A stretch of 64,000 nt of DNA from positions 124,001 through 188,000 of the forward strand of contig DF236991.1 in the NCBI GenBank assembly GCA_000708835.1. Direction: 5' to 3'. Below, piece after piece: positions 30,226-63,717 of this stretch (its first letter is position 1; each line of letters begins with the position of its first letter). The stretch comes from Klebsormidium nitens. Lineage: Eukaryota; Plantae; Klebsormidiophyceae. The notes beneath the pieces are model-generated. The model was given only the letters and a program-made list of their open reading frames with translations, was not told where the DNA came from and searched no databases. Position numbers and translations under genes: made by a program.

Positions 30226-33200
30226 TTACAAGCTTGGCGGGACATAGCCGTTGGCCTTGCAATGGGGGAAGAAGTTGTCCGGTGGATTGAACCCGTCGCA
30301 GCCAGCGGAGTCGCAGCATACGTATCTGCCTTGCGAATCGTTGTTGTAGTAGCAGCGGACGGGGAAGGCCGCTGCGCCCCCGGTCCCACAGACGCCTGCA
30401 TTGATAACAAGTGTCAATCAAGGAGAGTGGCGCCCCTTTGAGGCTGTGACAATGCCCAACTGCTCTACTGCCGACTGCCAACTACCCCAATCACCAACGT
30501 TTTGACGCTTCAGATGACGTGAGTTCACGAGAAGCTCAGATGAAACAATGCGCCCAGTTTTTGTGGTCGATCGCCTCATGACTGTGCCTAGACACTGCTT
30601 TAGGCAATACCCTAGCGGATTCCGCAACGTATAGCTTGTCGAATGCAAGAGTGAAAAATACAAGAACAGAATTGTCAAAAATAAGAAGCAAAAGCGCTCG
30701 GTTGTGGGTAAGAACACTCAAAGAGTGTTATGAGCCCTCAGCGTCTTAGAGAAGATGAGAATCGAGAAAAGGGCTTGGCTTGCAGCCCACACCGCGCTCG
30801 CTTATTCCCAAAATGGAAGCTCTGTACCAGAACGACCAAAAGCAAATCCCCGTCAAGAGGGCCAATCTCTCCTGAGTACAAGGTATTGTATCAACATAAC
30901 CTCCTTGACCACAAAAGGTGGGGTTGTTGCTTGCCTTGCGATCCACTTGGGGGCCCCGAATTAGGGGGCGGGGAAGTTTCGGGGCTCCCGACGCCATAGC
31001 CGGGCGGCACATATCCGTTCGCCTTGCAGTGGGGGAAGAGATTGTCGGGCGGGTTGAAGCCGTCACAGCCGGCCGCGTCGCAGCAGACGTAGCGGCCCTG
31101 GGGGTCGCTGTTGAAGTAGCACCGGGTGGGGAAAGCGCCGGCGGCACCGGAGCCACAAATGCCTGCGGGTGGGAACGGGTTATCGCTTGGTTAATTAAGC
31201 CCGGACACTTGAACCCAAGTGCTATCTAGAACATCTTGTCCGAAGGGGCAGCAGCACTTGTAGCGCCCCTGGGGGTCGCTGTCACTTGAAGTAGCACCGG
31301 GTGGGGAAAGCGCCGGCGGCACCGGAGCGGCAAACGCCTGCGTTTAGGAACGGGTTATCGCTTGGTTAGTAAAGTGCATGCACTTGAACCCACTTGATAT
31401 TTGGAACGTTCTGTCCAACTAGGCAGCAGCAGACGTAGCGGCCCTGGGGGTCGTTGTTGAAGTAGCACCGGGTGGGGAAAGCGCCGGCGGGACCGGAGCC
31501 ACAAACGCCTGCGGTTAGGAACATTCGTTAGCGCAGATGGTTAATGAAACCCGTCCACCTGACCGAAATCGAACTTTGGAACGAAGGGGAAGCAGCAGAC
31601 GTAGCGCCCCTGTGACGTCAAAATTGTTGAAACAGCACCGAGTGGGGAAAGCGCCGGCGGCACCGGAGCCACATACGCCTGGACGGAGACACGGGTTAAT
31701 GCTCATTGGTTTACAGACCCGGCATTTGAAGGGCCATTCCGTCAGCTGCTAATAAGCGACAGAGGGTTTGATAAGAACGGGTTACTATACGGTCCGCCAA
31801 ATTTAGCTGTTTGACCGCCTTTCTGATCTGATCAAGCGCACAGATGGGCCGTCCGTTAAGGGCGGGGGAGCCACGAATGACGGCACTTTTGACAGGTTGT
31901 GGCCAAATTCGTACGAAACATTCGCCGATTAAAAGAATGTTTTGAGTCGGACGGATGCGACACGGGCCGTTCGATTGCATTAGCCTACCAATCGGACGGC
32001 TCGACTTCTCTGAGCAGCTCAGACACCAGACTTGGCCCGATTCAACGGTCCAAGAGACTCATGGAACTTCACCTTGTGACCCACTGGGGGGTACTGAAGG
32101 CGGGGCAGTTGCCGGGGGGGTAGAAGGACTCCCGACGCCATAGCCGGGGGGCGCGTATCCGTTGGCTTTGCAGTGGGGGATCAGGTTGTCAGGAGGGTTG
32201 AATCCGTTGCAGCCTGCCGAATCGCAGCACACGTAGCGCCCTTGGGGGTCGTTGTTGAAATAGCATCGGGTTGGGAACGGGCTCGCAGCGCCTGACCCGC
32301 ACACACCTGCACGAAGGATGAGGTTAGTGCCAATCTGGTCAACTTCAGCTTTTTAAATTTTGACTAGATTTTCACTCTAGCGCCTTTGGCGGTCGTTGTT
32401 TGGAATAGCACCGGGCGGGGAAAGCGCCAGCGGTTCTGGACCCACAATCGCCTGCACGTAGGAACGGGTTAGCGCTTTGTCAGTAAAGCGGCCACTTGTC
32501 CGAAATCGAGATTTGGAACTCTTGTCCGTAGTGGAAGCAGCACACGTCGAGCCCCTGTGAAGTCGTTGTTGAAGTAACACCGGGTGGAGAAAGCGTCAGC
32601 GGCACCAATGCTAAACGCCTACGGGTTAGAAATGGGTCAGTAGACAGTTTGATGAACCTGGTCGCTTGACCAGACTTGTGATGGACAACCGCAACACTGG
32701 GCCGTCAGTTAAGGGCACGGGTGTGACAAGAGCCTGCACGTAGGAACGGGGTAATGCAGACTTTGTCAATGGTGGCTGCTTGCTAGATTTCGGACCTGGA
32801 GAACTGCGAGAATGGGCAGGACCCACAATTGCCTACACGTAGAAACGGCTTAGTGCAGGATTCATCAAAGCTTGCCGCTGACAGATTTGAGATTTGACGG
32901 TTGCGAGGTGGGCCAATCGACTTTCCGGAACAATCCTCCGACCAGCTCAATCCGGCAATAAGCTCAAAGAAGAGCCCCAAATCATCAAGTAGTCCCCACT
33001 GGACTCTTTTGGAATCTGGAAAAAGAGCGATGGCGACGCGACTAGTGGCGGGGGCGTTCCCGCCGGGATGCATGGACATCTAGAAAAAGCTAAGGGATCG
33101 ATTCTTGGGTAGCCTCGAGCAAAATGGTGGACTTTAGTTGCTTTGACTTAATGCTTAGCCAGTGCGGAACGCGGGCCACCCAAAACTGCCGGATACAACG

Positions 33201-36200
33201 AATGGCTCAGCGAAAGTTGAGCTGACGGATCGCCTAGAAAGGCATATCGAGCAGATAAGAGATCGCTTTAAAAAATCCTCTTTAACGCGAACTTTTGCCC
33301 GGCGTACTGATTTACTTCCATCGGCTTCATTCTCGGCCCGTCATCCTGAAACGCTCCTCATCTCAATAGGGGTTCTTGCGGTAAACCTCTTTTCTTCAAT
33401 TTCGTAAATTCTTCGAATGCCTCAAATGCTCGAATCCAAAGATCCAGAAATCCAAGAAAACCAAAACGAGCCCCTCGTATGCAAACTGCTTTCTAGAAGC
33501 CGATTGCGCTCGCCCGGACCTGTTTGGATTCGACGGTTTCAAAGGACAGCATCTTGCGTATCGTGGCAGAGTAAGCAGTCGAGAAGGGCGGCTTCAAAGG
33601 ACGGCACTTTGCGTCACCAGTCGAAAAAGCTCAAACCTTGTGTAGAAGGTGGCTTGCCTGGCCAAGCCTGCAACTATGGCTACGTGCCGCGAAACACGAC
33701 TTAAAGTACAGGAATGGCAAACCGAGCAGTTGGACCTCACCTTGTGACCCACTGGGGGGCTCCGAAGGCGGGGAAGTCTGGGGGGGGTTAGGAGGGTTTC
33801 CAGAATCCGGGGTCACAATTAGTCCACCACTGGCCTTGCAATGAGGTTCCAAGTTGTCTGGAGGATTGAACCCGTCACACCCTTCCAGGTCGCAGCAAAC
33901 GTAGCGGCCCTGGGGGTCGTTGTTGAAATAGCATCGGATTGGGTACGGGCTCGCATAGCCGAGCCCGCAAAGACCTGCACATAGGATTAGGTTAGTGTCA
34001 GGTTTGCGAACCCAGGTATTTGGCTAGGTTTCTATAAGTAGCGCCCGAGGGGGTCGTTGTTGAAGTAGCATCGGATTGGGCACGGGCTCGCATTGCCGAG
34101 CCTGCAAAAACCTGCACGTGGGATCAGGTTAGTGCCAATTTTTCCAAACCCGGCTTTGACCAGGTTCCTTTCTATAGCGCCCGAGGGGGTCGCTTTGTTT
34201 AAATTACATCGGATTGGGTACGGACTCGCATTGCCGAGCCCGGCAAAGACTTGCACGAAGGATTGATTAAAGCCAAGTTTATCAAACCCAGCTATTTGAC
34301 GAGGTTTCCATTTGTGGCGCCCTGGGGTTCGTTGTTGAAATATCATCGGATTGGATACGGGCCTGCATTGCCGAGCCCTCAAAGACCTGCGACGCGAGAC
34401 CCGCCTTTGTTTTTAGCATCTATAGCTGGTGTTTCAGGAAACAAGTGAGGTTTCGGCTGCAGCCCAGATTGGTAGCTAGCTTTTGACAAGCGGGCCGGTT
34501 ACTAGGGACGCCACGCGCAACCAAAGTGTGACGCTCGGATCCTTTGGCTTATCTGCTTTCAATCTCCGGCGATTTGAGCGAATGGCCACTCGTGGATGGA
34601 GTGGCAGTGGTCATTAGGGTCCAGTGACGTGTTGCTTGCCAATTCTCTTACAAGTATGTCTGACTACCTGCTTGACGGATGGAGCAACAATGGTGAATCA
34701 GAAAGCTGGGGACATGATGGGGCCAAAACCAAGTTCATCAGCCGTACGACTCAAGCGGCCGGGTTCTTGCAGACTTGAACGAGCTCGGCTTTACATCGAG
34801 TTCCGGATCCAGAGGCTTCTTCTGCTTGCAGACCTGGTGACCTAGACAGATCCTCTTGGTCAAAAGTATGAGACCAGAGTCGTTGATTCGCCCTTGAATG
34901 CGGCGTGATTAAGATGGGTGACGTAGAATGCGGAAATGGCTGACACAGAAGTCAAAATGACTGGTAAGAGAAGTCGAACAATCAGCGCAAATCCGTTTCC
35001 GGAGGGGAGTTTCACCTTGAGGATTAGCGACTGGCGGCGGAAACGGAATTGGGGCCGGCGTCGGACCGGGGTTCGGAGGACCTGCGATTTGAAAAACCAG
35101 CAAATACGATCCTGATGTGGACTGCCTTGGGACGACCCAGGGACGTTCCGGTTTCCTGCCTTGTTTCGCTCTTAGGGAAGGAGTCAAGAGGAACCAAAGG
35201 GGTTCTGAAAAGCCTCACGTCGTCACGCACTTGCCGTTCATTTCCCGTCCTCCAACAACCAACTTGGTCAAAGTAGGGCTGAAGAAGCGCTGCCTCAATA
35301 TATAAACGCTGTTCCCGCTCAGATACACATCATTATTTTCAACGTCCATTCACCATATCCCCCAGGTTAAGAGGTCCCCGCCGTTTTGCAATGATTTAAC
35401 TCCTACCAGAAACAAATCTTCTTCGTCGCAATTGAACGGAATTCTGAAAACGTGACAACGAGAGGTCAATGCAGACCTGCCGGAATTTCGAAGTGATTTA
35501 AAGGGAACCGAGCTCCAAGAAACTCCCACAGGAGGCGCACGATAGAGGCCATTGGATCCCCCTTGGATGCAGAGTTTCTGGTCAATTCAGATTCTTAGAA
35601 ACTTAGAAACTTAAGAGTTGTTAATGCCCCAAGTGCCACAAAAAGGGCGTTTGAGCGCATGACTCTTCATTGAAGCGATTTACCGCAAACCGCAAAATTT
35701 ACTTGGGGCTATCGGATAGTCATTTGGGCTGGGCACAATCCCCGAGCCAACGCACAGTGGCGTCATTCCGTCTGGTCCAATCGGACCGCACAATCCGTCG
35801 CAGCACACGTAGTGTTTGCCATCAGCGTACAGGCACGCGCGGAAGAACGTATCGTCGTCGCAGAGACGTGAATCTGCAATTGTTTCCCAAGAGAAGCTTT
35901 GAATATCTCGGAATTCTTGTGTTTCGGGATGCCTTTGTTGTAGGAAAGTGCATTCTAGATTTAATCTTCCTCGTGCTCCATCCGCTTTTGTGGGCCTGTC
36001 AAAACGCAGATCGGCTGAAATGAATGAATGAAACAGGTTGTCGCTTGGGCTGAGAGACCTGTCGGGGTCGAGAAACCTCAGATCCCTCTTGCGGAAATGA
36101 AGGCCTCGCAGAAGATCGCGTCTAGCGTTCAATTTCCGTCGCAACAAAAGCTGGCAGGCTACAGTGCAGGTCGAAGTCGGATGGAAATAGAGTGCCCAGA

Positions 36201-39200
36201 CAACCAAACAACGGACGGAGCAATCGAACCTCAAGAAGAGTCTAGAGCAACCGCTAAAATGTCTTGAGTTTTCGGGTCTAAAAGATTGATAGCACGGGGG
36301 GGTCTTGATTAGAAACGCAACAAACACACCTCGAAACATGCAAAATCCACAACTGCGACCATATAATATGACGCACCAGGAATTGCCTTTAAATTTTAGG
36401 CACGAGATCGTTCGCAGATGATACAAACACCGTGTCCGTCGCTGACTTCAAGTCGATAACTTACCCCCGAAACCGACAGCCGCTAGCGGGCCCGAATAGC
36501 CTTGCGCCGTAGCAATCACTTCTGGAAATTGACCGTTCACGAGCCTGCAAAAAGTTTTTACCGCAGCTTTGCTTTGCTTCCGCGTCTAGTAGACGCGGTT
36601 AATCGTTCGTCGATCATTTAGCATTCGTTTCATTGGCATGAGCGAGGGTTCTTTTTGTAAGAACGTTCCACAAGCGATACCCTGTGACAACTTCTTGCTC
36701 TTTGGAACGCACAAGGAACGCGACGTGTGTACAGTCTGGATAGATTTTACTTTGCAGGGTACCAGCGGGTTGAGCTGTGCCATGCTGGGAAGAATGGCTT
36801 CCCAGGAAACTCAGCCGCTTTTCTGTCGAAGAGTATTCTGATTGCAAAGACTGACACGAAGTCGAACACGTGTCGTTCAACCTGGAGCAGATCAATCAAG
36901 TGCCTAATGCAAGAGGACGAGAAGCTTTCGTAGAATCGACTCAGCGTCCTCCAATCGAGGTACGTGTAATTTGACAAAACTTTTCGATGAAAGAAGGAAA
37001 ATCTGAGGCATAAGGAGACGAGTACCAAAGACCGTCTGGGAGACTGTCTTTCCATGCACGTCACACAGTGCAAAATTTCACAAAGGTACGAGAACAGATA
37101 TTCAGAAGGATGAACGGGGAAGAAGCAGCGCGAGTCGCTTCTTCGATCTCCTTTCAGATCATCAGATGTGCAGGAACGGTACATAGCCCTTGAGCTGACT
37201 GACAGTTGAGCTGCTTTTCCGACTGCCCTCGTAATTGGGCGACTGCAAAGTCCGTGGTTCTATTGCAAACCTCAGATTAAGCAGAGGACCTCTGAAGCCA
37301 TAAGACCTTAACATCCTCAACTTTCAAAACGATAGAGCAAATAACAACTTACGGAAGGGAGCACGTCCGTCCAGCAAATTCTTGGGGGCATGAGCAGCCA
37401 AAGTCGACAATGGTTCCGTTCGGGTCGTCCCAGGGCGGAGCCGACAACGTCTCCCGCTGCGGGAAGCATGTGCCTCCGTTCTGGCAAGGGTTGGGGTTGC
37501 ACACGTCATTACCTGAGGACGAGAAAAGCAGACGTTACTATAGCCAAACGAGATTTGTTTCTTTGGAGGCACGACGTGCTTCCATTCTGGCAAGGGTTGG
37601 GGTTGCAATCGTCAATACCTGAAAACAGATTCATCATGGCAAGCGAGATTCTAGCTTTGACAGCACGTGCTCCACTGTTGCAAAGGTGCACACGTCACGA
37701 CCTAAACAAGGAAATCCAGGCTTTAGAATTTTCTATTGTCCATCTCTTTTCTCGCGGGTGCATCCATCTCGGCAAGGGATGCGTCGCAGACCTCACAACT
37801 TTTACTCGGAGAAGCAGGTCTTGAAGGATCCCAGAAAAAACAGCCTGCAAATGTTGCAGCAACGGAGCATCTTGGGAGTTTAAAGACAGAAGACCTTTGA
37901 TTATTTTGCCCCCTCCAGCCTTTTGGCTCTAGTATCAAGGACAGGATTCGACGTTTCGTGTGAGCTCAGACTGCTATTGTAGGCAACTCAAGAGAGTTGC
38001 CAACTTCGGAGGTGCATCATGTATGTAAGAATAACACAGATGGTGGAATAGTTGGCATGCAACGAAGATGCTCGACAGGACGACTTGAACAAGGTCGCTG
38101 TTCGTGCTGGCCCTTCTTGGGGGGAACAAGAAGCTCTGCAAAACAAGTTCCTGGGTACAATCTCCAAAACCCCAGGTCTTCGGGTCAAAACCGATCGAGC
38201 TGAACGTCCTCAGCGAAACTTGACCAAGACTTTCCAAGACAAAAGTTGGGTTATTTTCTCTTTCTTTTGCGCTCTCTGCAGCTTGCCATTGCCATTGCCA
38301 TTGCAGCTAATCGCGTTAACTGCGTCAGCTTTTCAAGATGAGTTTTGACATGATTGGGTTCGTGGTGAAAAGCTGACAGTAGGTGACTGACTTTAGTCCC
38401 TGGTACCAGCTTCTGTTCGACCAAATCAGCTTTTACTCTGAGAAAGTATACTTCTGGAAGCCGCATAGGTGGTTCAAGCGCTTCTAGCTTCTGTGACACG
38501 ACCCATCCTATTGTTGCCTGGTCGATTGAATTGAAAGAGGAAGGTAAAACATGGTTCACAGTTACGTCTACGCATTCTGGTTTCTGCTTGCATCTACAAA
38601 CAGGAGGTTTTAGCTGCTTCCCAGGCCGTTTGCTGTTGGACCGTGTCCTATGGCTCTAACCTTCAAGGCTGGTACCGGTTAAGTCCAGTTGTTGAACATA
38701 TAACCACTTTCTAACCACCCCATAACCAGACTATGACCAGCCCTGATTATATAACCACTTTCTAACCAGCTTATAACCAGCCATGGTTAAGTGCCAAAAA
38801 ATTCCTGAGACTTCAGAGCATGATGACGGGCCTTACCTGGGATGTAGCAACTGGTGCGGTACGTGTAGTAGCCCTGCACGAGGCCCTGTACATATGGGGG
38901 CTTGCACTGACAGGAACGCTCGTAGAAATTCCCAAACGGCGAACTTGAGGACTTCTCACTACATGTGTTGCCTGCAAGGGCGCCGAAGGGGATGCGTCAG
39001 AATTATATGAGCACCCTTAACAGTTTTTCCGGTCAGCGATCAGGCTTTGGGATACGCGGTTTGTAAGTGTGAGGGCAGTCTATGCTTGATGACAAGAGGC
39101 AGGCAGGAATGAAGCACATGCTTCCTTTTTGAGGGAGAGCTTGAACGTTCGGGCCAAACAGCCAAACTGTCTTTGTGGATGGCAATGCAGGTCGCAATTT

Positions 39201-40081
39201 GCTCATGGGATGCCAGACCTAAAAACAACCGGTGGGAAAAACTTTTGTTCCAGGCAAGTTGATGCATTCAGCTGAGAACCTCTGACTCTGTCCTCTTGGT
39301 GTTGGGTTCGCAGCTTGGAGAATATTCAGCAGGCTAACTATCAGTAACTCCTGATCAGCTTCAGCTTAGGCTGAAGATACCAGAGTCTGGTCCAAGCACA
39401 GGTCCGCTTCAGCTTGCCAAGCGTGCTGGATTTTCGATAATAGTCAGCAATCCGCCTTTTGCAGCGGTGTGGCAGCTTCAAAGCGATGTAGTGGGCAGCA
39501 ATGCAAAGCCAGCGAAGCCGAAAATGTCTTTTAAGTCTGTGATTGTAAGTAAGCTCAGGGTATGCATGTTTGAGTGTGTTTTGCTGAGGAGAAAGGCGAC
39601 TCCGACACCTTTCAGAGCGCCGACACAAATCCGGGGATACATTCGAGGGCCCCCGCGTCAAAAATAACATAATAAACATAATAAACAGCGTCTGTACAGA
39701 CAATTGAAGGGTCTGAATCCAGTAGACTTATTTCGGAGAGGTAATTGAGCCGTTGATATCAAGCATTTGAGATTCCACGTTGGCAGGTGGCCTCCAATTC
39801 CAGACACAAGACCAGGCAGGTCTCAAAAGGGGTTCCAAATCAGACGTCCAATTACAGCACCTCAACGGGATATATCACTCACCAGGACCGCAACCGACGG
39901 CATCATTGTAGCATACGTCTTCAGTGCATGCATGGTAGGTGTCTCCTCTGAAGGTGCTGATTGGCGCAAAGGCAGGGGGACATGAGTACCCAGGATACGG
40001 ATTGAAACCTGATTGGCTCAATGCTAGCGAGGGGTAGAGGCAGAGCAATGCTAAAAGGAGGGCACGGTTAGTAGGCGCCAT
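30226..40081 (-). CDS. Secreted modular protein: signal peptide, two EGF-like modules, four or more 6-Cys repeat modules with Pro-rich linkers
   Basis: Exons: 40081-39883 (MAPTNRALLLALLCLYPSLALSQ... signal peptide), 38971-38837, 37512-37353 (CNPNPCQNGGTC...CSCPQEFAGRTC), 35873-35703, 35081-35016 (Pro linker), 33974-33741, 32306-32073, 31162-30935 (GC donor) and 30395-30226 (stop). All junctions are phase 1 except the 37353 donor (phase 2), so one exon is unlocated or the locus is two transcription units. Confidence 0.78.
31250..31690 (-). repeat. Three decoy copies of acceptor + first half of exon 31162
   Basis: Pseudo-exon starts at 31337, 31508 and 31678 (spacing 175/171/170 bp). Each encodes a CGSGAAGAFPTRC...YVCC-like half-module and then returns to intron sequence. 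Confidence 0.92.
32377..32850 (-). repeat. Four more decayed acceptor/half-exon copies upstream of exon 32306
   Basis: Pseudo-starts at 32451, 32618, 32733 and 32832, sharing a CCTRCACGTAG(G/A)AACGG-like context on the plus strand. Confidence 0.82.
34038..34395 (-). repeat. Three decoy copies of acceptor + start of exon 33974
   Basis: Pseudo-starts at 34111, 34250 (AG mutated to AA) and 34386, spaced 137/139/136 bp. Each encodes an ASPYPIRCYFNNDP-like stretch. Confidence 0.92.
37560..37632 (-). repeat. Single decoy copy of the EGF exon acceptor and start
   Basis: TTTTCAG|GTATTGACGATTGCAACCCCAACCCTTGCCAGAATGGA lies about 107 bp upstream of CTCAG|GTAATGACGTGTGCAACCCCAACCCTTGCCAGAACGGA. Confidence 0.92.
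38697..38782. repeat. Intronic imperfect TAACCA-rich repeat (ATAACCACTTTCTAACCA x2, about 51 bp apart)
   Basis: Read directly from the sequence. Confidence 0.75.
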
Positions 40082-40097
40082 TGTGAACTTGACACTG

Positions 40098-40601
40098 TTA
40101 GAAACAAGACTGGAATCCTGGCCTGCTTAGTAATCCATGAGGCTGCTGCTCTTGGGTGCCAAAGCTGATGCGGTCATCGGACGCTGCAAATATGTACACC
40201 GATGAGTTCCTTCGTTGTTGTTCCAGAAAGGCGCCCTCTGTATATACGTCAGCTAAGAGCTTGGTTTGCCTGAGCTGAGCTGAGCTTCTAGCGTTCGCAC
40301 AAAGAGTCAAAATGCAAGGGGCCTTCAATGTCTCCAAAGTCGCTCTCGGACTGGACTTCGAGTGCTCAAGAGAACTGCTACCATAGCTAGGATATAGGAC
40401 TAGCTCAACTTCTGCATTATGCACGCTTAATAGGTCACCGCCCTTCAAACATCGAATCAGAAGGTGCAACGTGATTGTGACGGTGATCCCTGCGTCGCCG
40501 GCCGCCGCCGCAAGTGGGCCGACTTCTCGGATTAAAGCATTGCGCAACGTCATAAACCCAAGTATTACCTTGTTAGCGAAAGGTTTACGTGCACGTTCCA
40601 T
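40098..40601 (-). CDS. 167-codon ORF ending 16 nt before the secreted-protein ATG; possible upstream ORF
   Basis: The ORF track shows a protein-like middle (ALIREVGPLAAAAGDAGITVTITLHLL). No family recognised. Confidence 0.25.
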   Translation of the reverse strand: MERARKPFANKVILGFMTLRNALIREVGPLAAAAGDAGITVTITLHLLIRCLKGGDLLSVHNAEVELVLYPSYGSSSLEHSKSSPRATLETLKAPCILTLCANARSSAQLRQTKLLADVYTEGAFLEQQRRNSSVYIFAASDDRISFGTQEQQPHGLLSRPGFQSCF

Positions 40602-40769
40602 ACCGAGCCTTTAACTACACATTTTAAAAGTGGGACATCATCGAAGACTAGACTTTAGAGAACATCAAACCAAACGCCGCCCGTCCAAGCAGATTCCCCA
40701 TGAAGCTACGGTAACCCTGTAGCTAACGCGGTAAGGCTTCGACGTTCGGTTCACGTAGGCAGAAGGCGC

Positions 40770-41260: not shown

Positions 41261-41406
41261 GAAGAAACTTTTCGACCTAGCGAGTGATTGCGGTTGACGA
41301 AAAACTGAGCGGCTGCTCAACAAAAACCGAAATGATTGCTACCTTCCACAGTCAATGGTATGACGGGCGTTGACCATGCACCTCCCTTATGAAATGTATG
41401 GCCCAC

Positions 41407-47496: not shown

Positions 47497-50400
47497 ATGA
47501 CCAGCAACGAGGATGGGGCTGCAGATGCGCTTCTTGGGGAGCCCTCCTCTGAGCACGGGGCACCGGCCGTTGCAATATCCAAGCCTGACATGGAATTGAA
47601 GCAGCAAGCAGGGGGGCAGGACAATGTTATCCAGGTTGAGGGACCAGATGAGAGTTTGAGTGAGGGTTTGGCAGATAAGGAGGTTACGACGGAAGAAGGG
47701 CTGGACGGAGAAAAAGGACCTCTTTTAGCGGAAAGTAGGTCGATGGAAGCTGGGAGGGGAAAGGTCGGGGAGTCTGAGTTGATTGAGTGCAGGATATGCC
47801 AGGAGGAGGATGAATTGGCAAACTTGGACACGCCGTGCGCGTGCACTGGAAGCGTCAAGGTATGCGTTTTTGAGTTTCTTGAGTGAGTGGTTAGAAAAGT
47901 TAGCATCAGTCATGTTTCCTGCATACTTGCCATCGCTTACTTACAGCTGTCCTTGACATTACAATGGCCAGTAAAGGAATAATGTGGATTACTTTCCACA
48001 GAATAGTGGCTGCCTTGAACAAAGGAGCATTGGCAGCTGGCATGAGCTCGTTGGCGGCTTAGTATAAGACCTTGACGCAGGTATTACTGCTTCTGGGTAA
48101 CATTGTTTCGAGATGTCGACATTCATCAACCCGTCAAACTTGCGGGCGTTGGGGGAGCTCTTCTACAGGGCTCCTTTTGCACTTTTCTGAAATTCCCTGC
48201 TCAAAACTTCTTTCGCCACATTCTTGTAGGTTCGATGATTTTGTTTGCTGAATTGGTCGGTAGGATTGCTGACATACTTTCCATCTAGGTCTGTTGCAAA
48301 GTGTGCTCAGTTTTGGGAGAATTTGAAGGCTGTCTTCTCATTTCTTTGGTCTTGAGCCCAACTCTCACAAAAATCTGTATGCCATCGTAAAGTTTCCGGG
48401 CCTCCTCTTACGCAGTATGCGCACCCAAAGTGCGTCCAGCGGTGGTCAAATGAGAAGGGGGATGCAGTGTGCGAAATCTGCCATCAGGTATGCTTTGCGA
48501 AGTCAGGAGTCCCAATTGACTTGGAATTTTGTCCTTTTTGATCTTTTGAGGCTTCATTTTGCGAGCTCATATGTGGTATGGCCTTCCGGCCCTCGCAGAA
48601 CCCATCACTTCAGTCATTAACCTTCAATCGCTTAGATAGGTTATCAGATGAATTTACTTCAGGTCAGGCCGGGCCGCAAACCCTAATCTCTTAAGCAAGG
48701 CTCCTTGGGTATGCCATTGCGAAGTAGGGCTTGGGGTGCCTCAGTGTGGAGAAACCAGGCAGATGAAAGAGTACTGAATGAGCCTTCATGAGATAACCTT
48801 CCAAAAGACAGTCCTGAAGCCCGCTTTTTCACTGTGAACACCCGTAGATTCATGACCTGAGTAATCCGCCTCCACGTGCGCAAATCCATTACTTTGTCAA
48901 GCCCCCGTTCTGCGCTTGTCTTCATGTCCAATTGCCAGTATTTTTCCCTTGAATGATCAAATTCTTCCTCTTTTCTCAGCTTCCAGGGCCTTTTGTGGAG
49001 CACTACACCCCCAATTCGAAAGGTCCTGTATCGCTAACTCTACCCCTCTTCTTGTTGCAGCCGTATAAGGGTTATACCGCGGTTCCCCGACCCCCTCCCC
49101 AGGTCTCCGTGGCTCTGCCACTTGAATTCGCGTAAGTTCTTATGGTCTAGTGCCTTTTCCAGCCCCCAACTCTGAAAAATGTGGCGTCCTAAGTGGAGTC
49201 TATTGCTTTGCTTTTGCCTCCCTGTAACTTGCCTGTTACGGTCAGACTTCCCCTGTCAGGTTTGCTTCGCATCTGACCCTCGGACCCTCGGACTATATTG
49301 GAGGTCAAACAATTTGGGAGGACTCCTGGCAGACTTCTGACTCGGGTGGTTTCTTGCGTTCATTTTAGACGACTTGGTCAGAGGGTCTCGGCCAGAATAC
49401 GGTATCAACAAGGCAGTGTAGGTGCCGTCCCCGAAAGGTTCGGAGAATATATTTGCAGTTGCGATCGTGGAGAGTGCTAGACGCAATTGTCCCTTCAGAG
49501 CAAGAGCGTCTCTCTGTGAAGTTTGCCAACACTTGGTGTAGGTGCAAATGATCTGGGTAGCATAGGCTGGTCAATGTTGCAGCTAATGAGGGGCTAGGAC
49601 GGTCAGTTGGTCCACCCCCTCGTCTGTAAGGTCAACCCGTAATCCTCTCCCTATTCAGCAGGTTGTTTGCTTGCTAACGCTACTGGGTTTGGCCGTGGGC
49701 ACAGGGTTGTTTGCATGCTAACCCTCTTGGGTTTGGCTCTACTCAGCGAGTTCTCTCCTCGCTGATCCTCTCCGGTCATCGACCCAGAAGTTGACTCTGC
49801 AATCTGCAGTGACGACTGGGCTATTGAGCACTTGGACAGTTGGCCACAACTGACGATTCACCAACTTGTCGCGTACGTATGTTTAACACGTAACCTGGCC
49901 CCCACTCAACGGGTCGTCTGCATGCGAACCCGGTCGTGCTCTTTAACTCAGATATCAAATTTGCAACGTGCAGTGACGACTGGGCGCTTGCGGGGCAGCG
50001 GTTGAGCGACCCCCGGTTGCTCCACCAGTACACTCTCGACGTAGACTACAACGAATATGAGGGGCATGCGAGCACGACTGCCTGGTGCAGATCGGCCGCT
50101 TTGATTGTGAGTTGATGGCCCCCCTCAGCTGTATCGTTTTGCCTTGCTTTTTGCTTTTTGTGTCCCTTGCCGATGTTCTGGTCTGCGGCTTTCCTATGGG
50201 CCCGTGAGTTGCAAGGTGAGAGGTCAGGTGCAGATAGGGCGCTCTGAACCCGTAATCAGCCACTTCTCATAGGTGGCTCTGAAATGTTTGATCTCACTCT
50301 CGGGTTGCTTTCTTGATACACCTTTGCTGCTGGCAAATGTTAGTTGTGAAGCCAATGACGAGGCAGAAGAGTCGTAACAGCGCTTTTCCAAAAACCGACT

Positions 50401-51450: not shown

Positions 51451-51509
51451 AGTATTTGTAAGTGTTAGGGTCTGCCGGGTGCTTCGCATGAAAAGTGTCA
51501 AATCTTGGA

Positions 51510-51582
51510 GAAAGAGTTGTCGGCTGAATGAAGTCTTTAGGTCTACTAGAGTTGTCGACCGAACGAAGTCTTTAGGTCTATG
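51510..51582. repeat. Approx. 35-bp tandem duplication in the RING 3' region
   Basis: GAGTTGTCG..GAA(T/C)GAAGTCTTTAGGTCTA occurs twice in tandem. Confidence 0.8.
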
Positions 51583-54481: not shown

Positions 54482-54561
54482 ACCGTCTCTCTGTTTGAAG
54501 AGAAGAGGTTGACCAGCTTTTGCAGACCCAAGCGTTCAGCATTGTCAGGAGCCTGCCCACA

Positions 54562-57500
54562 ATGGCGGCTTTTTCTGTGTCAAAATTCTCAGTCAGTGCG
54601 TTTGTAGTGCTGATCACCTTGTCGTCAATCCATGCAACGGCAGCCAAGAAGGGCCCTGTGAAGAGGATTTGGTACAAAGCACCCGACCTCTACCCTGAGG
54701 GGGTATCCTACGAAGCGAAGCATGATCAGTTCCTAGTCAGCTCGCTCCGAACCCCGTGCATAACGGCAGTCAAGGAAGATGGAAGCTTTAACACGTTTGT
54801 CTGTGACCCAGAGTTCGAGGGAAAGTTGGTCCTGGGGGTGAGAGTGGACGAGCCGAGAAACAGGGTGGTTGCAGCAGTTTCCTCGATGTCTCCAGATGAA
54901 ATCTACGCCGCTGTGGTCGGGTATGATCTGGACACTGCTGACAGGGTGCTGTTCACGAGGCTGGATGAGGTTACTCCGGAGCCCTTGGGAGACCCCGAAG
55001 ACTCGGATTATTTGAAGCCCCCGGCTGTGGCAAATGATGTTGCCATTGATGCAAAAGGTGGGGGATAGAATGGAAGGGGTAGAAAGTCACCCTCAGATGG
55101 ACCTGTGCATGGAAAGAAGGGAAGGATGTGCATGCACAGATGCATGCAGTCAGCATTTACCAATTGTGGTTCAAATGGACTTATTCACGAAGTTTTGATT
55201 GGTTTCAAGCATCAGCTTTCATAGCCAGCTTTCTTGGGTTAAAATGTGGTGAGCATTCTTGCAGTGCCTTTTCGTTGGCAGCACGCGCTGCATGATGGTT
55301 TCAGAATCAATCACAAGTTACTGGCTGGGGATTTGTTGCTACGAAGGGTTGGCAAACTTCAGGGGATCGCGATCGGTGGAGTCACATTGAGGATGTCATC
55401 AAGCTGTGGCAGTGTTTTCGATTCAATTGATGATGCATTCCTGGGGAGAATTACCTCCGCCTTAGTCTGGGACAATATTTTCAGTTGCAATGAGGGTGAT
55501 GCCACACACAAGGAGGTGCCATTTTTCTGAAACTAGCACAAAAAGCTCAACCCCTTTCAGCATGGGGTATCTTATGATCAAGTGGCCACGACTAGAGCTG
55601 CGCACTTTAAGAGGAACCAAAGTTCCTTCCTTGGAGGATGGTAATCAGAGCGGTCCAAATTGAGGCATCCCAGACTGATGTCTTCCAGTAGTGTTTGCAG
55701 TGCCGTTCACAGTCCATGGCTTGATTTTGTTTAACTAACATCTGGAATTGATATCACCATGACATAGATGTATTGGGACAAGAAAAATAGAGTTCCTTGG
55801 GAAGCGGGACTCATTGGTCCTTAATCACATGAAAACCCTAATAACCAAAAACCCTCGAATCTTAAACTGTCTGTGTACGGCCCATCCTGCAGGCAACCTC
55901 TATGTAACCAACACCCTGGGCAACTCAATCTGGAAAGTGGGAACGGACGGCGCAGCATCAGTCCTGACAGCGGACCCCTTGTTCTCATCCCTGCCCAACG
56001 TCTACCAGGTGAGCTGATCACTGAATCCGTTCTGAGCTTTTTTACCTTGCAAACAGGTTGACCGAGGCACTTTTTAGGAGAGCAGGGAACGTGTTGACCT
56101 AGCATTTTGCGCTGTGGTTGCTTTCAGAAGAAGAACCTTGTTTGGCGGGTCAAGCTCTTATCGAAGCCTTGCAATCAAGGCATGGGGCAAAATGCCAGTT
56201 GAGCGGCACAGCCTGTATTGAAAGGGCATATGCATTTGTATTGAACTCTGCATCCCAATGGAGATTTAGAGAAGAACTTCGTAAGAGTGCTATCTGCTAT
56301 TTCTGCAGGTCCCAGACCTTGGAGCAGTGGGTCTGAACGGCATCGAGTACCACCCCAAGGGATTCCTCCTGGTCGGTCACACGAGCGCAGGGGCCCTTTT
56401 TAAGGTATGTCTCTTGACCTTATCACTTCGTTCTGCTACACATCTCCCAATCTGGACCGCACGATGGAGTGAAACCTTTCTTCCTTGTTGCTTGGTTGTA
56501 CGCATGACCACTTTCCTTTCACTTCATAAAGAAGTGCCAAATCAGGCTTTGATCTGGTAAGATAAGAAGGTCTCTGACAAATCGGGTCACACTATGGTCC
56601 AAAAACCTGGGTTTTGGAAATCTCAACTCGTCCAAAATATTTTTTTCGAGGAGTTGGTGGTTTGGTTTGGCAATGCCTTCTAGGATCCCAACGATTGAGC
56701 ACGATGCCGGTAACAGCCTGTGATACCAATGCAAATGGGCGCAAGCTCATCAAAAAGACTTTTCCGCACGTCATGTCCCTTACCTGCTTCCATCAGTGCT
56801 CATTCGCCCCTCGCCGCCCCGTTGTGGAATCCTTTCTAAAAACCTCAAAATCTTGCTGGCCACTTAGCTGTACTTCATCACATTGGATTCCACTTTACTT
56901 TCCTCCACCTTCAGCAGCACTCGCTTCAGTTCTGGGTAAACTTTTATCACCCTTCGGTGGACGGCATTTTTAAGGGGATGAAGCTTCCCCTCAATTGCAT
57001 GCTCCAGTTCATGATGTCACTACAAACGACCTTCAAGGTAACCTTAATTGAACAAAGTCAATTCTTCGAAGTCACTTTCTCCTTCAGTTGCGCCGTCATT
57101 TTCTTGTGTGCAAACGAAGACAAAATGTTTCATTTCGGAATGGTGAAGACAGTCGCTTTCAAACGTGTTGCCCCAATCGAAAGAGGAACGAGTTCAAAGT
57201 CAACCCCTTTTTTCATCTCGCTTTCTCCCTCTTCAGTACCGGCGTCATCCCTCAATACTTGCTTTTGCGAGACTTACTACCGAAAGTCTTTGCAAGACCA
57301 TTGAAAATCTTTGCAAGACCAGTGCGGGAGCGGACATTTGTTCTGTTGAACCTTGTTTCGGATTTTGGTATGCAATCAACTTCGAACGACGTGATGTAAC
57401 TAACTTGAAATTTTCATTAGGGGTACTTTCTCCTTCTTCAGTGTGCTGTCATTGTCTTGGCGGTAAATCTCGACGAGATTATCCTAGTCGGACGGCTTTT

Positions 57501-59174
57501 TCTTGAGACAAGCAAATGCGTCTGATCTCTCACCTCCCAAGAATACTGGGTTCACTTTGACCCAAAAGCTCATTCCTCCAGGTTATTATCTTCTTTCGTG
57601 ATCAGCGCTGGTACATCTTTTTTCTTCATCAGCAGGTTCACATCTCCGTGGTATACCTCGACAAGACCATCCCAAAATGTTTACGGCGTTTTCTTGGGAC
57701 AGTATTTCTCTGTTGGATTTGGTGAAAGGACTCGAGTCCCAACGACACTGGGCTAACTGTAGGCCACACTCATCTTCGTTTCCCCAGGTGATTTTCTCCC
57801 TCTTCAGCACCGCTGTCACTGTCTCTCAGATGCGACCAACCCAGGAGTGGACGGGAGTCTCCCTCTTCGCAATTGTGAACGCATCGCCATCCTATATGTC
57901 CCCCTAGACGCCCATGTGTAACACCAAAAGTTATTCCCCTCTTTATTCCAGGTCACATTTTCCTTCTTCAGCACCGCCGTCACTGTTTCGGTAGTAAACT
58001 TTGACCACACCATACCGGGAGTCGACGGCTTTTCCCTTAGGACACATATCCTCTTTCAGACCTCGTAAAAAGACTCAATTCTTAATGACACTTTGAAGTT
58101 AAACCCAATTTCATTGCTCTTTCAGGTCACTTTCTCCCTCTTCAGCACCGCCGTTACTGTCTCGGTAGTAAACCTCGACGAGACCATTCCGGGAGTGGAC
58201 GGCATCGTCCTGCGGCCCGACGGAAAGCTCGTGGCCGCGAGCGTCTTTGGCATCCACCTCGTGGAAAGCAACGTGAGGGCCTCCTCTTATGTTTCTTCGG
58301 TTGGTTCTTTGTTGTGCTCGAGAAGTTTTCCTTGTCTATCATGTCTGTTCTTTGGAAAGTTGACTTACACATTCAACGGCAGACCAGTCGACGAATCTGC
58401 AAACAGGGGGCCTGTCCGGTTGGCGGTACGAGAATGATCGCCCGTGGCACTGACTTCAGTGTAGCGTTGATTATCAGAGTGTTGATCAGATTGCAATCTG
58501 GTGGGATACTCGTTTCTAAAGTGTCGGCCCCAAAGACCGCCAACAAGTCACAAGTCTTTGGAGTGTCTCAGATGCAGAGCTCTGGACTCAAAAGACTGCC
58601 GACAATTACAGGTTATGGAGTGTTTTCCGGATGCAAGAGTTTCGGACTGTGAGGTTGTGGAGTGGCCGCTGACGTAATGCTTGAGATATGCAGTCGTTTG
58701 CGCATTTCCAGACGTCAAATCCAAAAGTTGAGGTACAAACACTGCTCAGCGCAATTCAAGAGCTTCGGGTTACCTTAGTGAGTCGGTTAACTTCGTTAAC
58801 CTTCTGATTCTCTCGTTGACCTTGTTTTCTGCCAGGACAACTGGGCCTCGGCCAAGCTAGTCGAGACCGTCTCGCTCAAGTCCTCAGAGCCGGCAACTGC
58901 GATCACACTAAAAGACGGGCTCGTGTATGCGAACCTCGGCCAAGTCCACAAGCTCCGGGCGGGCAAGTCGAACAAGTGGTTCGAGCTCCGTTTGATCGAG
59001 TTCCAATCGGACGCCAAGAGTAAGCCTAAGAGTAAGCCCACCGCCGCAAGGGCTGCCAAGAAGGGTGCGAAAAGCACACAGAGCGCGGTTCCGGTGGTTT
59101 TGATCTCCGGGGGGTTGCTGGCGCTTCTGGCGCTCGCGCTGGCGAAGGACAAGAAGGGGGCGAAGCATCATTGA
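54562..59174 (+). CDS. SMP-30/gluconolactonase-NHL type beta-propeller (plant calcium-dependent phosphotriesterase superfamily), with signal peptide and C-terminal hydrophobic segment
   Basis: Exons 54562-55057, 55893-56008, 56309-56404, 58126-58272 and 58836-59174 are phase-consistent. Motifs include APDLYPEGVSY, VANDVAIDAKGNLYVTN, GLNGIEYHPKGFLLVGHT and GVDGIVLRPDG. Confidence 0.9.
56890..58125 (+). repeat. About seven decaying copies of acceptor + start of exon 58126
   Basis: Pseudo-starts at about 56895, 57071, 57217, 57421, 57582, 57788 and 57952 share a TTTCTCC(C/T)TCTTCAG-CACCGCCGT-like core. Similarity is highest next to the true exon. Confidence 0.88.
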
Positions 59175-59689
59175 TGCGGGGCGGGCATGTAGGTTATAGA
59201 GACTAACCTAGAGAGCGTAGACCGTTTTTGATGGTCAAGTCCCGATTTCGAGGACCGCGCATATTGCCATGCTTGATGACGTCATAGGCACGGGTAGGGG
59301 ACGCTCGAGAGTAGAAGAGTTAGTTGCAGTCCGGCATCTATGTGTATTGATGTACATACGTCGTCCTGAGAGCGTGCTTCACTCACAAAGTTTTTCTCGT
59401 TAGTCCCTCCACAACCATCTTTGATATCCGACTGAAGCAACCGGACCAACGGCTTGCAGTAGGGTGGCCTGCTCTTGGCGCATATGCATTGCCAGGCTGA
59501 GCGCGAGCCTCGGAGTTAGCGTTTTTTCGTGGCACGCAGTTCGTTGCACGTTTGAAGTTGGTCGGAATCATAGAGATACGGATCGTTAAGGGATGTTTAG
59601 CCGGGATGTTGATCCAGACATGTTCAAACTCAATCTCTGAATGGTAAGCTGTTCAATTCATTGAATCTGAGATAAGACGGTTTTATTAA

Positions 59690-60300
59690 TTGGTATATTT
59701 ACGTGTCATGTTTGCATGATGGCATAAAAATTGCCACTGCATCGGCGCGGTATACTACTAAACAATTGATTAGTCCCCCCTATGGCTGCCATGCACCGGC
59801 CATGCATGCAATGCCTGGCATGCCATCATTACGGTATGTAAGTTGGTACAAGAACGCGAGCGCACGTATATGCCATGTGTGGCCCAATTCAACTTGCATG
59901 ATGCAAGTTGAATTATTGGACTCGCGGTTAGTAAGTACCAGCTTGCACTGCAGATCTCTGTCAGTGCATCTAGCAGCAGCAGCAGCTTCTAGCTAGCTCT
60001 GTACGTACCGGCCGTCGCCGTCGCAGATCGAATACGCGGCGTCGCACCGCGAACTAGTAAAACTGCAACGTGATGCCGCCCAACTTATAGTGGCCGCGGA
60101 CCGGCCGGTTGCAATTGTGCCAGTGATGCCGGGACGGGCCGCGCGGCGCGCCGGGTTTGCCAGGGCGGCGACGGTGGCAGTGACGTCACTGCCACGCAGT
60201 ACTGCAGTCCACTTTTTTCGTACAGCAACATGCTCCGAACTGATGCAAGTATACATATGTACTATATTGCCATGATATGGAGGGATACGTTGCATAAGAC
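59690..60300. other. Intergenic island rich in CATG/TGCA/GTAC palindromes with a GC-rich core
   Basis: Includes GCCATGCACCGGCCATGCATGCAATGCC at about 59787 and GGCCGCGCGGCGCGCCGGG at about 60137. Confidence 0.4.
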
Positions 60301-61545
60301 TCGGATGACAATGAACTGCAACGACAGTGACATGCCCAAGAACATTTGAACTTGTCAGAAAGCGCCCTGTATACTCCAACTACTGAAAGGTAAGTTTGTG
60401 CAAAGTTAGAAAGTCTGACGGGGCTAGCAGGCTCAATGTTAACTTATCAAAGCTAAAAATAGAAAGCAGGCTCTTTGTTGGATCTTGCGAAGCGAAATAT
60501 GTTGTCTAATTGTAGCAAACTCTGATGCAATCATACCCGTGCTAGCTAGGCTGCTTGCCAGCCTGCCGCACTAGCTATTCAGGTTATGTAAAGGTCTTGG
60601 AGGTTTTCGACATGATCCCGAATACGCGGTGCAAACAACTTCAAAATCTGCGGCTCTAGCATCTTTGAAGCTGCGTATATCGTGGTTAAGACCTGCACCG
60701 GCACCTTCATCTGCATATTACAGTGTCGGCATCCGCATGTATGATTGTAAGATTACGTTCTTTGTTTCCGGGTTCCTCTAAGTGTGCACACGTCTTAAGG
60801 CTTGCCGGATGATGTTTTCAACCATCGGACTTTGGCGTGATACCCAAGCTCCTGTATGTGGTCAACCGAACTAGTAAGGGCCGCACTTTTTCTAAGTTTC
60901 CAGCTTATCATCCGAAAGACTCCCATGGAAGGCACGTACCGGAGCGGGGGACGGGGGCACTGATAGCGCTTCCACCGGGGAAAGGTAGACGGAGGGAGTG
61001 GGCGGTATCGACAAATGGTCCCCCGGGGTTTGATAGGCAAACCCTTCGCAAACCTGAAAGTCAAAAAGATGAATACCAATGGCTCGGAACGGAAATTCTG
61101 ATCGCCGATCAAATGAACCAGCCCCCAACAACCTCCAGAGAAGTTGAATTGCAAAATCTGGCTGGCACAAAGTTTCTTGACACTGTCTGGTTGACATACG
61201 GTCGACAGACTAACAGCTGACGCCAGCGTCCGCCAGCGTCGAAGCTTTGGCAGTGTTAACTTTGTCGGCAACGTAAAGCAGAAACCGGTGATCTGAGTCT
61301 GCCACATGAGACGGGGAATCCCAAGAGGGGCCCTTCTGTACAACGTCCTCAAAGCGTGCATCGACCCATTGGGTTCTTCAAGAATGAATAAGCTCATCGG
61401 CTGAATGCAGAATACGTAGGCGGTTGACAGGATCTAATGGCCACTTCCAAGGTCGGCATCGGTTTCGACAGACAGTCTGGAATTGCTTTCAAGGAACTTT
61501 CTGTAAAGTCAGTGATCCAAAACAAATTTAGGAAGGAGCGCGCAC

Positions 61546-63717
61546 CTCCAAAAGGGCTTCAATGGTCGGCTGGTCGCCGAAAGTCACTTCCCGGAATTGG
61601 TAGAGGACACCGTTGTCGCCAGGGCCTATTATGTACACGCCGCCCTTAACCCTGCAATAACCCCTAGTGATTAGGATAGTCACGGGCGAATCTGTGACTG
61701 TTCGCCCAGTTTTAACTGCTGGGCTTTAACTGCTCGGCGGGTTGAAGAGGACTTGACCCCACTGCTTCCCGCCCTTGACCCTGCAACAACCCCTGGTGAT
61801 CTGAATGAGTTTTGCCAAACGTGCGAGCGTTCGCCGAGACTCTGACGGCTGGGCAGGTGAAAGGGATTTGACCCCAAACTTAACCCCTGCAATAAACCCG
61901 GTTAATTAGGATGCGTTCTGCAAATTTGCGACTGTTGCCCAGCTTTGATGGTTGAGTGGAACATTCAAAGTTGACCCGCAACGCTCGCCCAAACCTTCTA
62001 GGCAGACGCCGCCCTTGACCCTGCAGTAAGGTTGATAGGTTGAATGAACGCGTCACTTTCGTTGCCTTTCATCACGCAGTTGACGGTTGGGTGGGTTAAG
62101 CAGAATCTTTTCTCTTTGCGCTCGCCTGCTTTTTCACGTACACGCAGCCCTTGTCCCTGTGGTGCTGGGTCAGCGAAAAGAAAATCCAGGCAAACCGCAG
62201 AAGCACGTAACTGCGTCGGAGGGACGGCATAACATCGCCCCCCATCGTCTGATATGGACACTCCAGATTCGTCATTGATTGGCGTTTTCCTGACCCTAGC
62301 TGGAACACCCCTGACCCTCTATCCTGACGTGGTCAAAAGGCTCGAGGGCTGAGTGTTGCAGATCGCACTTGGCACCTCAAGCCTCGCCTCCTCTGATGCA
62401 ACTTTCTCGGTGCAGATATTGCGCCTGTCTGGATCGCCTTTCTAACCCTGCACAAACCGCACCGGCAGACTAGAAGACATTCCTGTATCTGCCAGTTGAC
62501 CAGTGGCCTCGAGTGTTTACAAACAGATTTGGACGTCCTAAGACTCTCTAATCGACCTGATGATACCACAATTCTAATGCTGATACACGATGCTTCAACG
62601 AGCTTTTTGGTTGAGCTTGAGCGTGTGACATAAGAAGTATCTCCGACCGAGTCTCCCGCAGTGGCGTCAAACAAAGAGTATGAATGCTCGTCGATGTCAG
62701 CGTGACTGGATCTGAAATGAACGGCTCAGCATAATTGAGAGCGCCGCGAAATTTCGACTCACAGGCCATTCCCCACCAGGTTGCCTGGAACGCGGTTTCT
62801 CGTCATGGCCGTGAACTGGTGCGACAAAACCTGGGGAAGGCAAACCGGTGACGTCAGAGGTCCAGGCGGAGATGACGTCACGGGCGTCAACTACAAGTCG
62901 GCAAGTGAATCATGGGTTCGGCCTTTCCAGCGACAACATCGAAACCAAGTGACTATAGCCGTAAGGGCTCGTGACAAAGAAGTGACATCAGCGGGATCTG
63001 CCCATGATGACGTCAACCGATTGGGAAGCCTGCATAGCGGCGACGTCGCGAATGCTAAGGAAGAGGTGGCGACGAAAAATGCCCAATGAAAGCGCCACTT
63101 GGAAAGTGGCGGCAGGTTTGACGGCTTTCGAAAGAAGCGATGACAACAAGGAAAGTGTTCAGAAGAGATTCTGCATGCTCAGTGGCATTTCTTGCTAGTA
63201 CCCGCGGGTAGTAAGAAGAACTGTCTGGGAATAAGAATGGACGGAGCTGGTCTCCGTCAAAGCCCGGGCGGATAGGGATGTCATTGCGGCCGGCTGAAGT
63301 GTCCATGACGTGACATGCGGACAGAATCAGAAGTCTAAACAAGACTGAACGTCCAACAGCGGTCAGACAAACAAAAATCCGAGAAAAAACAACCCCTGGA
63401 TTTTCCAGTGCAAAGGAGGTTTCGAGAATTGAGCCACGTCTTCCAAAGGCTTTGCAATCGGACGTACACGAATGCTTGTGGATGCCGCGACCGACTTATG
63501 GTCTGGCGAGCCTGCTAAAGCGTCGCATGCAGATAATTGGACGAAACATGATCAAAATTGCAGATCTAAATTGCTGAATAAGGCATTTGAAATAATGGTG
63601 TTGAGGTTCCGCCGTTTCGACCATAAAGACTTACCCGGGGGTTGGCGACCAAGCCAACGAGGCCGCCCTTTGCGAGTCGCCCTCCCCACAACGCTTTGAA
63701 GAAGGACTTTCGCCCAT
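61546..63717 (-). CDS. PRXL2A: Peroxiredoxin-like 2A / AhpC-TSA-2 family protein, partial (5' and last exons not located)
   Basis: Exons 63717-63635, 62830-62763 and 61651-61546 join in phase to give (D)GRKSFFKALWGGRLAKGGLVGLVANPR-VLSHQFTAMTRNRVPGNLVGNGL-VKGGVYIIGPGDNGVLYQFREVTFGDQPTIEALLE. This matches my recollection of the PRXL2A C-terminal GN-x-x-G-x-G..GGV(F/Y)V.G.G..G.L...RE..FGD pattern. Confidence 0.82.
61652..62460 (-). repeat. Six decoy copies of acceptor + start of exon 61651
   Basis: Pseudo-starts at 61780, 61886, 62020, 62156, 62295 and 62447 (spacing about 106-152 bp). The core on the minus strand is YAG|GGT(T/C)AAGGGC. Confidence 0.88.

Follow-up and report, generated by a model that had tools for sequence, protein, structure and literature searches.

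Recursive splice sites and decoy exons, such as the ratchet points of Drosophila, the recursive-splicing (RS) exons of vertebrates and the decoy exons that favor intron retention, are conserved and used by the spliceosome. Partial internal gene duplications that include splice sites, with an extra copy that can be intronised, are also said to be frequent in work by Gao and Lynch from 2009 (PNAS 106:20818); these were reportedly mostly single two-copy events over model genomes, and that survey is not known to include junction-anchored multi-copy arrays in many genes of a single genome with a preference for acceptors. Human minisatellites, as Jeffreys and colleagues reportedly described in 1994, grow by misaligned exchange or conversion, with new variants favoring one end of the array. 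Tandem duplication of exonic AGGT is an accepted route of intron gain (PMC3443670), for which there are an in vivo test (PMC3265369) and the case of the potato RdRp (PMC4974935). Here we analyzed a 64-kb stretch of Klebsormidium nitens DNA (the window; about 50% G+C, eukaryotic, with intron-rich genes), in which introns of several genes carry head-to-tail copies of their own 3' splice junction.

These arrays resemble each of the known systems in part. As in the AGGT model, a local intragenic tandem duplication supplies splice signals and the duplicate is spliced out, leaving the mRNA unchanged. However, what is copied in the AGGT model is a piece of exon, and the new intron arises between the two AGGT copies, whereas in K. 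nitens the intron pre-exists, and the unit spans the junction, is present in 2 to 7 copies and merely lengthens the intron; moreover, the homology of intron ends to neighboring exons that marks the AGGT model was not seen, the donor regions having no significant similarity to the units. Minisatellites share the head-to-tail units of tens to hundreds of base pairs, but one end of the K. nitens arrays is a functional, selected splice junction. As with recursive sites, there are intronic copies of the 3' splice site, some of them directly before GT; in contrast, the K. nitens decoys (the copies other than the working junction) are unused in RNA contigs, mostly lack the AG/GT form (the slash marks the splice boundary) and decay when old, and the combination of AG/GT and stepwise removal in RNA was not found, with no decoy joins among contigs, which drop rare forms. 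Introner elements (PMC9860276) likewise add intron sequence to many genes in a lineage-specific manner, but they are dispersed, mobile and near-identical, whereas each K. nitens unit is the host gene's own junction; in our blind screen no dispersed matches of the units, as introners or transposons would give, were detected, all matches being local and gene-specific. A search of the full-text literature turned up no account of such a pattern, whether for Klebsormidium or for other organisms, which is not proof of absence. What sets these arrays apart from the known intragenic duplications is the use of existing junctions as units, in multiple copies, in many unrelated genes of one genome and with a bias toward acceptors.

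The RNA evidence consisted of assembled contigs from runs of different studies (years 2015-2024), placed on two 6-kb stretches, and the contigs of four independent runs fixed nine introns in three genes (Cys, SMP30-like and PRXL2A-like, the last called PRX-like below). Each verified intron was searched with its own acceptor region (-30 to +90), its donor region (-90 to +30) serving as a control query, and the threshold for a copy was the 99th percentile of shuffled introns. Acceptor copies occurred in five of the nine introns (18 copies in total, 2 to 6 per array-bearing intron) and donor-side copies in none of the nine (one-sided Fisher p = 0.015, our own arithmetic). When the full 64 kb were compared blindly with themselves by blastn, the significant near direct repeats were confined to six junction loci, in the Cys gene, at the EGF-like exon and the 49.8-kb exon and in the SMP30-like and PRX-like introns, bar one marginal 70-bp duplicate, while block-shuffled controls gave 0 to 1 matches. 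Tandem Repeats Finder placed two long-period arrays in the window, at 31080-31522 (period 175) and 33901-34390 (period 137), and a repeat finder listed further families at 37.5, 49.8, 57-58 and 61.6-62 kb. The marginal duplicate, a tandem one at 23428-23549 on the plus strand with 75% identity, has no obvious exon link and is the only non-junction local repeat in the window. In RNA run X4, low-depth pre-mRNA contigs cover 33947-34883 in the Cys gene and 56750-57474 plus 57467-58153 in the SMP30-like gene with 0 differences, and an unspliced contig of run X6 spans 61622-62700 in the PRX-like gene, also with 0 differences. Because these unspliced contigs from independent cultures cross the arrays without differences, the arrays are not assembly artifacts.

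The preliminary description of this DNA, made from the sequence alone, had already reported such arrays, and RNA-fixed introns, shuffle-thresholded search and blind self-comparison all bear the observation out. Its unit lengths agree with ours (171-175, 136-139, 146-206 with a mean of about 176, and 106-136 bp), and on reading the sequence at the arrays we also found that only the most 3' copy is joined to the remainder of the exon. The arrays do lie in unrelated genes, are anchored on a functional acceptor and make up much of the host intron, as had been claimed: they occupy roughly 400-1100 nt, filling just its 3' part, and introns with an array measure 910-1721 nt, whereas the four verified ones that lack arrays measure 492-621 nt. 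The absence of arrays over 5' splice sites here was likewise reproduced by the empty own-donor search of the nine introns, but the number of Cys-gene introns with copies, given as four, came down to three of the five verified ones. The gene labels RING, SMP-30, PRXL2A and DnaJ are taken over from that description and are unconfirmed in the window, where Pfam gave nothing on single-exon pieces.

At all nine verified introns the most 3' AG is the sole join used by the spliced contigs of the four runs, and in five RNA runs no decoy AG was the end of a spliced contig (contigs drop rare forms). The mature mRNA is thus left unchanged through the terminal site in the Cys, SMP30-like and PRX-like genes. 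One low-depth X4 contig joins a cryptic donor, ccaa/gtgcga (62368, minus strand), within the PRX-like intron to the real acceptor; this donor sits about 80 nt after the far decoy acceptor tgtgcag/ggttagaaagg (about 62450, minus strand), and the contig may represent a cryptic exon born from a decoy.

All arrays consist of direct, head-to-tail units with regular spacing (the Tandem Repeats Finder periods being 175 and 137), and every unit combines sequence from the intron side and the exon side of its junction, for example from -109 to +83 or from -128 to +73. The exon part of the copies spans 14-87 nt across arrays, and each window array has a single fixed exon-side end: +83 to +87 in two related Cys arrays, +73 in a further one, +77 to +80 in the SMP30-like array and +15 to +19 in the PRX-like array. 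Fixed exon-side ends at other loci lie at +48 to +53, +64 to +67 and -76 to -81. On the intron side the units begin 60-117 nt upstream of the AG, past CTAAC-like branch sites (about -17 to -35). This extent speaks against reverse transcription of lariat intermediates, which would stop at the branch point, and we rejected that origin.

Within the decoys, preservation is far higher in the exon part and in the final ~35 nt ahead of the AG than elsewhere in the unit. Compared with the real copy, the exon part of the Cys decoys is 0.86-0.94 identical and the intron part 0.72-0.74; for the SMP30-like decoys the values are 0.84 and 0.58, the latter equal to the random baseline. The better preservation of the exon part arises, at least partly, because the real copy is under selection while the decoys drift, and may be reinforced by occasional gene conversion from the real exon. 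Most decoys relate to the real copy in a star-like manner. By our count about 29 of 37 retain the AG, which is near the neutral expectation at 15-25% divergence, and AG loss falls mainly on the oldest copies, with four of six lost in the SMP30-like array. A consistent age gradient was considered and rejected. With increasing distance, identity to the real copy runs 86, 75, 75, 76, 86 (a short stretch) and 73 in the SMP30-like array, where a gradient is roughly true, as it is in a donor array of a GH3 gene at another locus; it fails for Cys intron 31163-32072 (88, 95, 81), for Cys intron 33975-35015 and for the PRX-like intron (91, 82, 92, 86). Copy numbers were the same across the RNA runs, which probably share one strain, and only one DNA sample carries the region.

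The individual arrays and the gene structures that hold them are collected in Table 1. In Cys intron 31163-32072, whose real acceptor is at 31163 with the first exon base at 31162, the unit is made of about 85 nt of intron tail, the AG and 83-87 nt of exon head. Intron 32307-33740 contains, besides the two decoys with exon heads, two more copies with the 3' splice-site region only (32720-32757 and 32819-32856). The array of intron 33975-35015 has an exon part of ~73 nt, and one of its copies reads CAA in place of the AG. The SMP30-like array, with a spacing of 146-206 nt and an exon part of ~80 nt, has weaker traces back to about 56896 and has lost the AG in all but the two exon-proximal copies, while all four near decoys of the PRX-like array keep it, with an exon part of only 14-19 nt. 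The EGF-like decoys contain the acceptor and the first 34-43 nt of their exon. AG/GT is the form of the SMP30-like and EGF-like decoys and of no others: AG/GC stands in the Cys decoys, AG/GG in the PRX-like ones and AG/TG in that of the exon at 49974.

Table 1. Junction arrays, RNA-verified gene structures and array-free control introns in the window; the acceptors of the EGF-like exon (37.5 kb) and of the exon at 49974 were inferred from sequence only.
Feature	Position	Strand	Evidence
Cys array, 3 decoys at 175/346/519 nt, period 171-175	31163..31711 in intron 31163-32072	-	4 runs join 32073 to 31162
Cys decoys, 2 with exon head (32378-32475, 32537-32591)	32307..32888 in intron 32307-33740	-	alignment
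Cys array, 3 decoys at 137/276/412 nt, period 136-139	33975..34395 in intron 33975-35015	-	RNA and alignment
EGF-like exon, 2 decoys ~106 and ~190 nt upstream, cag/GTAATGACGTGTGCAACCCC	37513..37710	-	sequence
Exon starting 49974, 1 decoy, unit 164 nt, junction coordinates -12..+12	49782..49990	+	sequence
SMP30-like array, 6 decoys at 174-1055 nt	57063..58125 in 1721-nt intron 56405-58125	+	RNA and alignment
PRX-like array, 4 decoys 129-505 nt upstream and a far one near 62450	61652..62460 in intron 61652-62762	-	RNA and alignment
Cys gene, verified introns	30396-30934, 31163-32072, 32307-33740, 33975-35015, 35082-35702	-	RNA contigs
Cys gene, exons	30200-30395, 30935-31162, 32073-32306, 33741-33974, 35016-35081, then exon starting 35703	-	same spliced contig in every run
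SMP30-like gene, verified introns	56405-58125, 58273-58835	+	mRNA joins 56404 to 58126, 58272 to 58836
PRXL2A-like gene, verified introns	61054-61545, 61652-62762	-	mRNA joins 62763 to 61651, 61546 to 61053
Control: Cys-gene intron, GC-AG boundary, no decoys	30396-30934	-	RNA-verified
Control: SMP30-like intron, no decoys	58273-58835	+	RNA-verified

Beyond the window, we sampled seven other K. nitens loci (177 kb in total, assembly GCA_000708835.1, none overlapping the window), reached through proteins that matched one Cys-module exon in a profile-free search. They were passed through the same blind screen, followed by reading and alignment; arrays within Cys-family genes were excluded, and junctions were inferred from sequence and reading frame. 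Six further acceptor arrays were found, two in a GH3 gene and one each in a RING-domain gene, a protein kinase gene, a DnaJ/thioredoxin gene (four decoys) and a panB-like gene (Pfam Pantoate_transf). The same loci hold two mirror-image arrays on the donor side, in the GH3 gene (locus L001) and in the RING-domain gene (L002, 89-nt unit). The GH3 donor array repeats about 80 nt of exon tail, CAGAG/GTGAG and about 85 nt of intron start four more times at a spacing of 145-176 nt, and all four decoys keep the splice dinucleotide; an acceptor array of this gene sits only ~300 nt upstream of it, so that both kinds occur in one gene. Between the acceptor and donor arrays, at L001 22872-23185 (minus strand), the public annotation splits this gene in two (19225-22987 and 23065-26238), and the GH3-like reading frame changes within the same interval, owing to a short unrecognized intron, a frameshift or a sequence error.

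Over the combined 241 kb, the tally is 10 acceptor and 2 donor arrays (two-sided binomial p = 0.039), which amounts to a junction-anchored array for about every 20 kb sampled, in various stages of decay. Of the polarity that had been proposed from the window, the acceptor bias therefore stands, whereas an acceptor-only rule does not, given the two donor arrays. Intergenic tandem arrays with units of 102, 117 and 157 nt were observed as well (L001 3169-3890; L004 349-661), and the other loci also hold short minisatellites (45 and 65 nt) away from junctions. As the intergenic units are of like size, splice junctions are not the only places where duplications of this class arise, and together with the donor arrays they point to a general tandem-duplication tendency in K. 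nitens. Array formation is common in this organism and occurs on both sides of exons, with acceptors ahead of donors.

On balance, we lean toward the view that these are DNA-level tandem arrays with units of ~90-180 bp whose terminal unit is the working junction, and that they arose by a founder duplication, amplification and decay. In such a scheme, a tandem duplication over an intron/exon boundary would place a truncated exon edge and a complete splice signal inside the intron, and the unit would then be multiplied by misaligned homologous exchange or replication slippage, a step that we infer. The duplicates would be tolerated because the main transcripts use only the junction that continues into the intact exon, which in acceptor arrays is the last AG, as in the RNA contigs; in donor arrays the first GT is presumed to be used. 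Everything between the real sites would leave as intron, and older units would decay neutrally, losing the AG, with the intron-derived part becoming unrecognizable first. The net outcome would be an intron grown by hundreds of bases together with a stock of decoy splice sites. The fixed exon-side breakpoint, the regular period and the whole-unit homology in young arrays argue for one founder followed by unit amplification. Serial fresh duplication, as had been suggested earlier, is unlikely, since the copies within each array all stop at the same exon position, and on these fixed breakpoints we rejected independent serial events.

Several observations weigh against this founder-and-amplification account. 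The concentration of arrays at junctions is not accounted for by duplication plus decay alone: there are 12 junction arrays and, in the 241 kb, no array of 100-180 bp inside called genes away from junctions, although uniform duplication predicts about three times more intron-interior than acceptor-spanning arrays (the array-free intron being ~500-600 nt each). By our estimate, a 2- to 4-fold faster decay of intronic sequence lowers the junction excess but leaves part of it. The acceptor-to-donor ratio of 10:2 also has no demonstrated cause; our best guess is that decoy donors are purged more often, U1 needing little context. Furthermore, the identity among the Cys decoys themselves, 0.86 in the exon part against 0.64 in the intron part, is above simple neutral decay and hints at gene conversion or selection. 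Finally, the acceptors of young decoys match the real one in apparent strength but are unused in the spliced contigs.

The junction concentration could be explained if 3' splice sites were hot spots coupled to splicing or transcription, of the kind that the preliminary description proposed, at which a paused polymerase or spliceosome, or R-loops, stall replication or lead to breaks whose repair duplicates 100-180 bp at the active junction, at acceptors more often than at donors; we regard this as rather unlikely, though as a live rival. It is in line with the position of all 100-180 bp arrays inside called genes of the 241 kb on junctions, with the 10:2 bias toward acceptors, and with the freshest copy lying beside the real junction in the SMP30-like, GH3 donor, panB and DnaJ/thioredoxin arrays. 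However, there is no direct evidence of such a process, the fixed breakpoints need one founder event per array only, and arrays of the same size arise between genes without splicing. Nor is the age gradient consistent, the most exon-like copy being a distant one in Cys introns 31163-32072 and 33975-35015 and in the PRX-like intron, and a version that runs through cDNA of the lariat intermediate is contradicted by units that reach well upstream of the likely branch sites. It is with similar reserve, as a speculative possibility, that we consider a K. nitens process which acts at active junctions, is about 5 times commoner at acceptors, duplicates 100-180 bp and would be a main route of intron growth and a standing source of decoy sites and new exons.

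A functional role of the decoys appears improbable. Here selection would keep them as RNA elements that recruit U2AF/U2 and tune splicing speed or intron retention, or as recursive sites. Conservation is indeed higher between about -35 and the far end of the exon head than elsewhere in the unit, even from decoy to decoy, the splice dinucleotides are perfect in 4/4 near PRX-like decoys and 4/4 GH3 decoy donors, and the SMP30-like and EGF-like decoys have the AG/GT form of recursive sites; the minor RNA contig with a cryptic donor ~80 nt past the far PRX-like decoy acceptor points the same way. On the other side, a constrained real copy and occasional gene conversion can account for the conservation, AG loss among the older copies runs near the neutral rate, and AG/GT is missing from the Cys, PRX-like and 49974 decoys, so recursion is not general; the spliced contigs, moreover, never end at a decoy AG.

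Slightly less probable again is an origin of the decoys as leftovers of larger duplications, either of whole exons or of exon plus intron, which would make them dead pseudo-exons, or of an entire short ancestral intron together with its two flanks. The Cys gene does consist of tandem paralogous exons whose arrays were partly copied with the exon: a block duplication aligns 30982-31521 with 32126-32632 at 71%, and because of this partial co-copying the two Cys arrays concerned are not independent events. The other array genes, however, do not encode repeat proteins, and no decoy contains exon sequence beyond the fixed breakpoint. If a whole short intron had been duplicated, a unit would include the upstream exon tail and donor; of 19 units whose intron-derived part was tested against donor regions, one Cys unit matched faintly (ACAAG..AGTTCCA, p about 0.05) and the others showed nothing significant, and the whole-intron version was rejected. 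Assembly artifacts from collapsed or mis-joined reads can be set aside almost entirely, for although the genome is an older short-read draft and one locus has an N run flanked by an identical 35-mer (L005 1546-1580 and 2243-2277) that looks like an assembly-gap artifact, RNA contigs of other studies cross the arrays of Cys intron 33975-35015 and of the SMP30-like and PRX-like genes with 0 differences.

The Cys gene (30226-35873, minus strand) encodes one six-cysteine module of ~76-78 residues per exon, with introns placed after the first codon base, and its last intron, 30396-30934, has a GC donor (caag/GCAAGC) that is supported by 4/4 RNA runs. The module has no Pfam match, and among 1.84 billion proteins it matched 24 representatives, most of them K. 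nitens paralogs or proteins of close relatives, which indicates a lineage-restricted family. In three contigs of relatives that were reached through the Cys module (L008, L010 and L012; 51 kb; module exons 70-81% identical) no arrays were seen, in what is a small sample; this gives a weak hint that K. nitens stands out in array density. The SMP30-like exon, used to scan metagenomes for orthologous loci, returned nothing. The module genes of the relatives were called as uninterrupted open reading frames of 191-325 residues (L008 8541-9509, L010 10001-10978 and L012 10001-10576; from Logan, JGI and ENA), unlike the successive modules of K. nitens, which are separated by introns of 0.5-1.4 kb, and in L008 at least, several K. 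nitens module exons all match one stretch (8838-9014) of a 969-nt open reading frame. The contrast may reflect intron gain or intron loss in the Cys family.

Intron growth and the origin of new splice sites and exons are old open questions for which direct traces are rare. In K. nitens an age series, the breakpoints and both acceptor and donor versions can be read in one genome. The arrays are also likely to mislead gene predictors, and they coincide with the annotation split of the GH3 gene. If the junction enrichment fails genome-wide, the arrays would still be a natural experiment on a spliceosome that ignores up to seven near-perfect decoys; if it holds, it would point to an undescribed link of splicing or transcription to local duplication.

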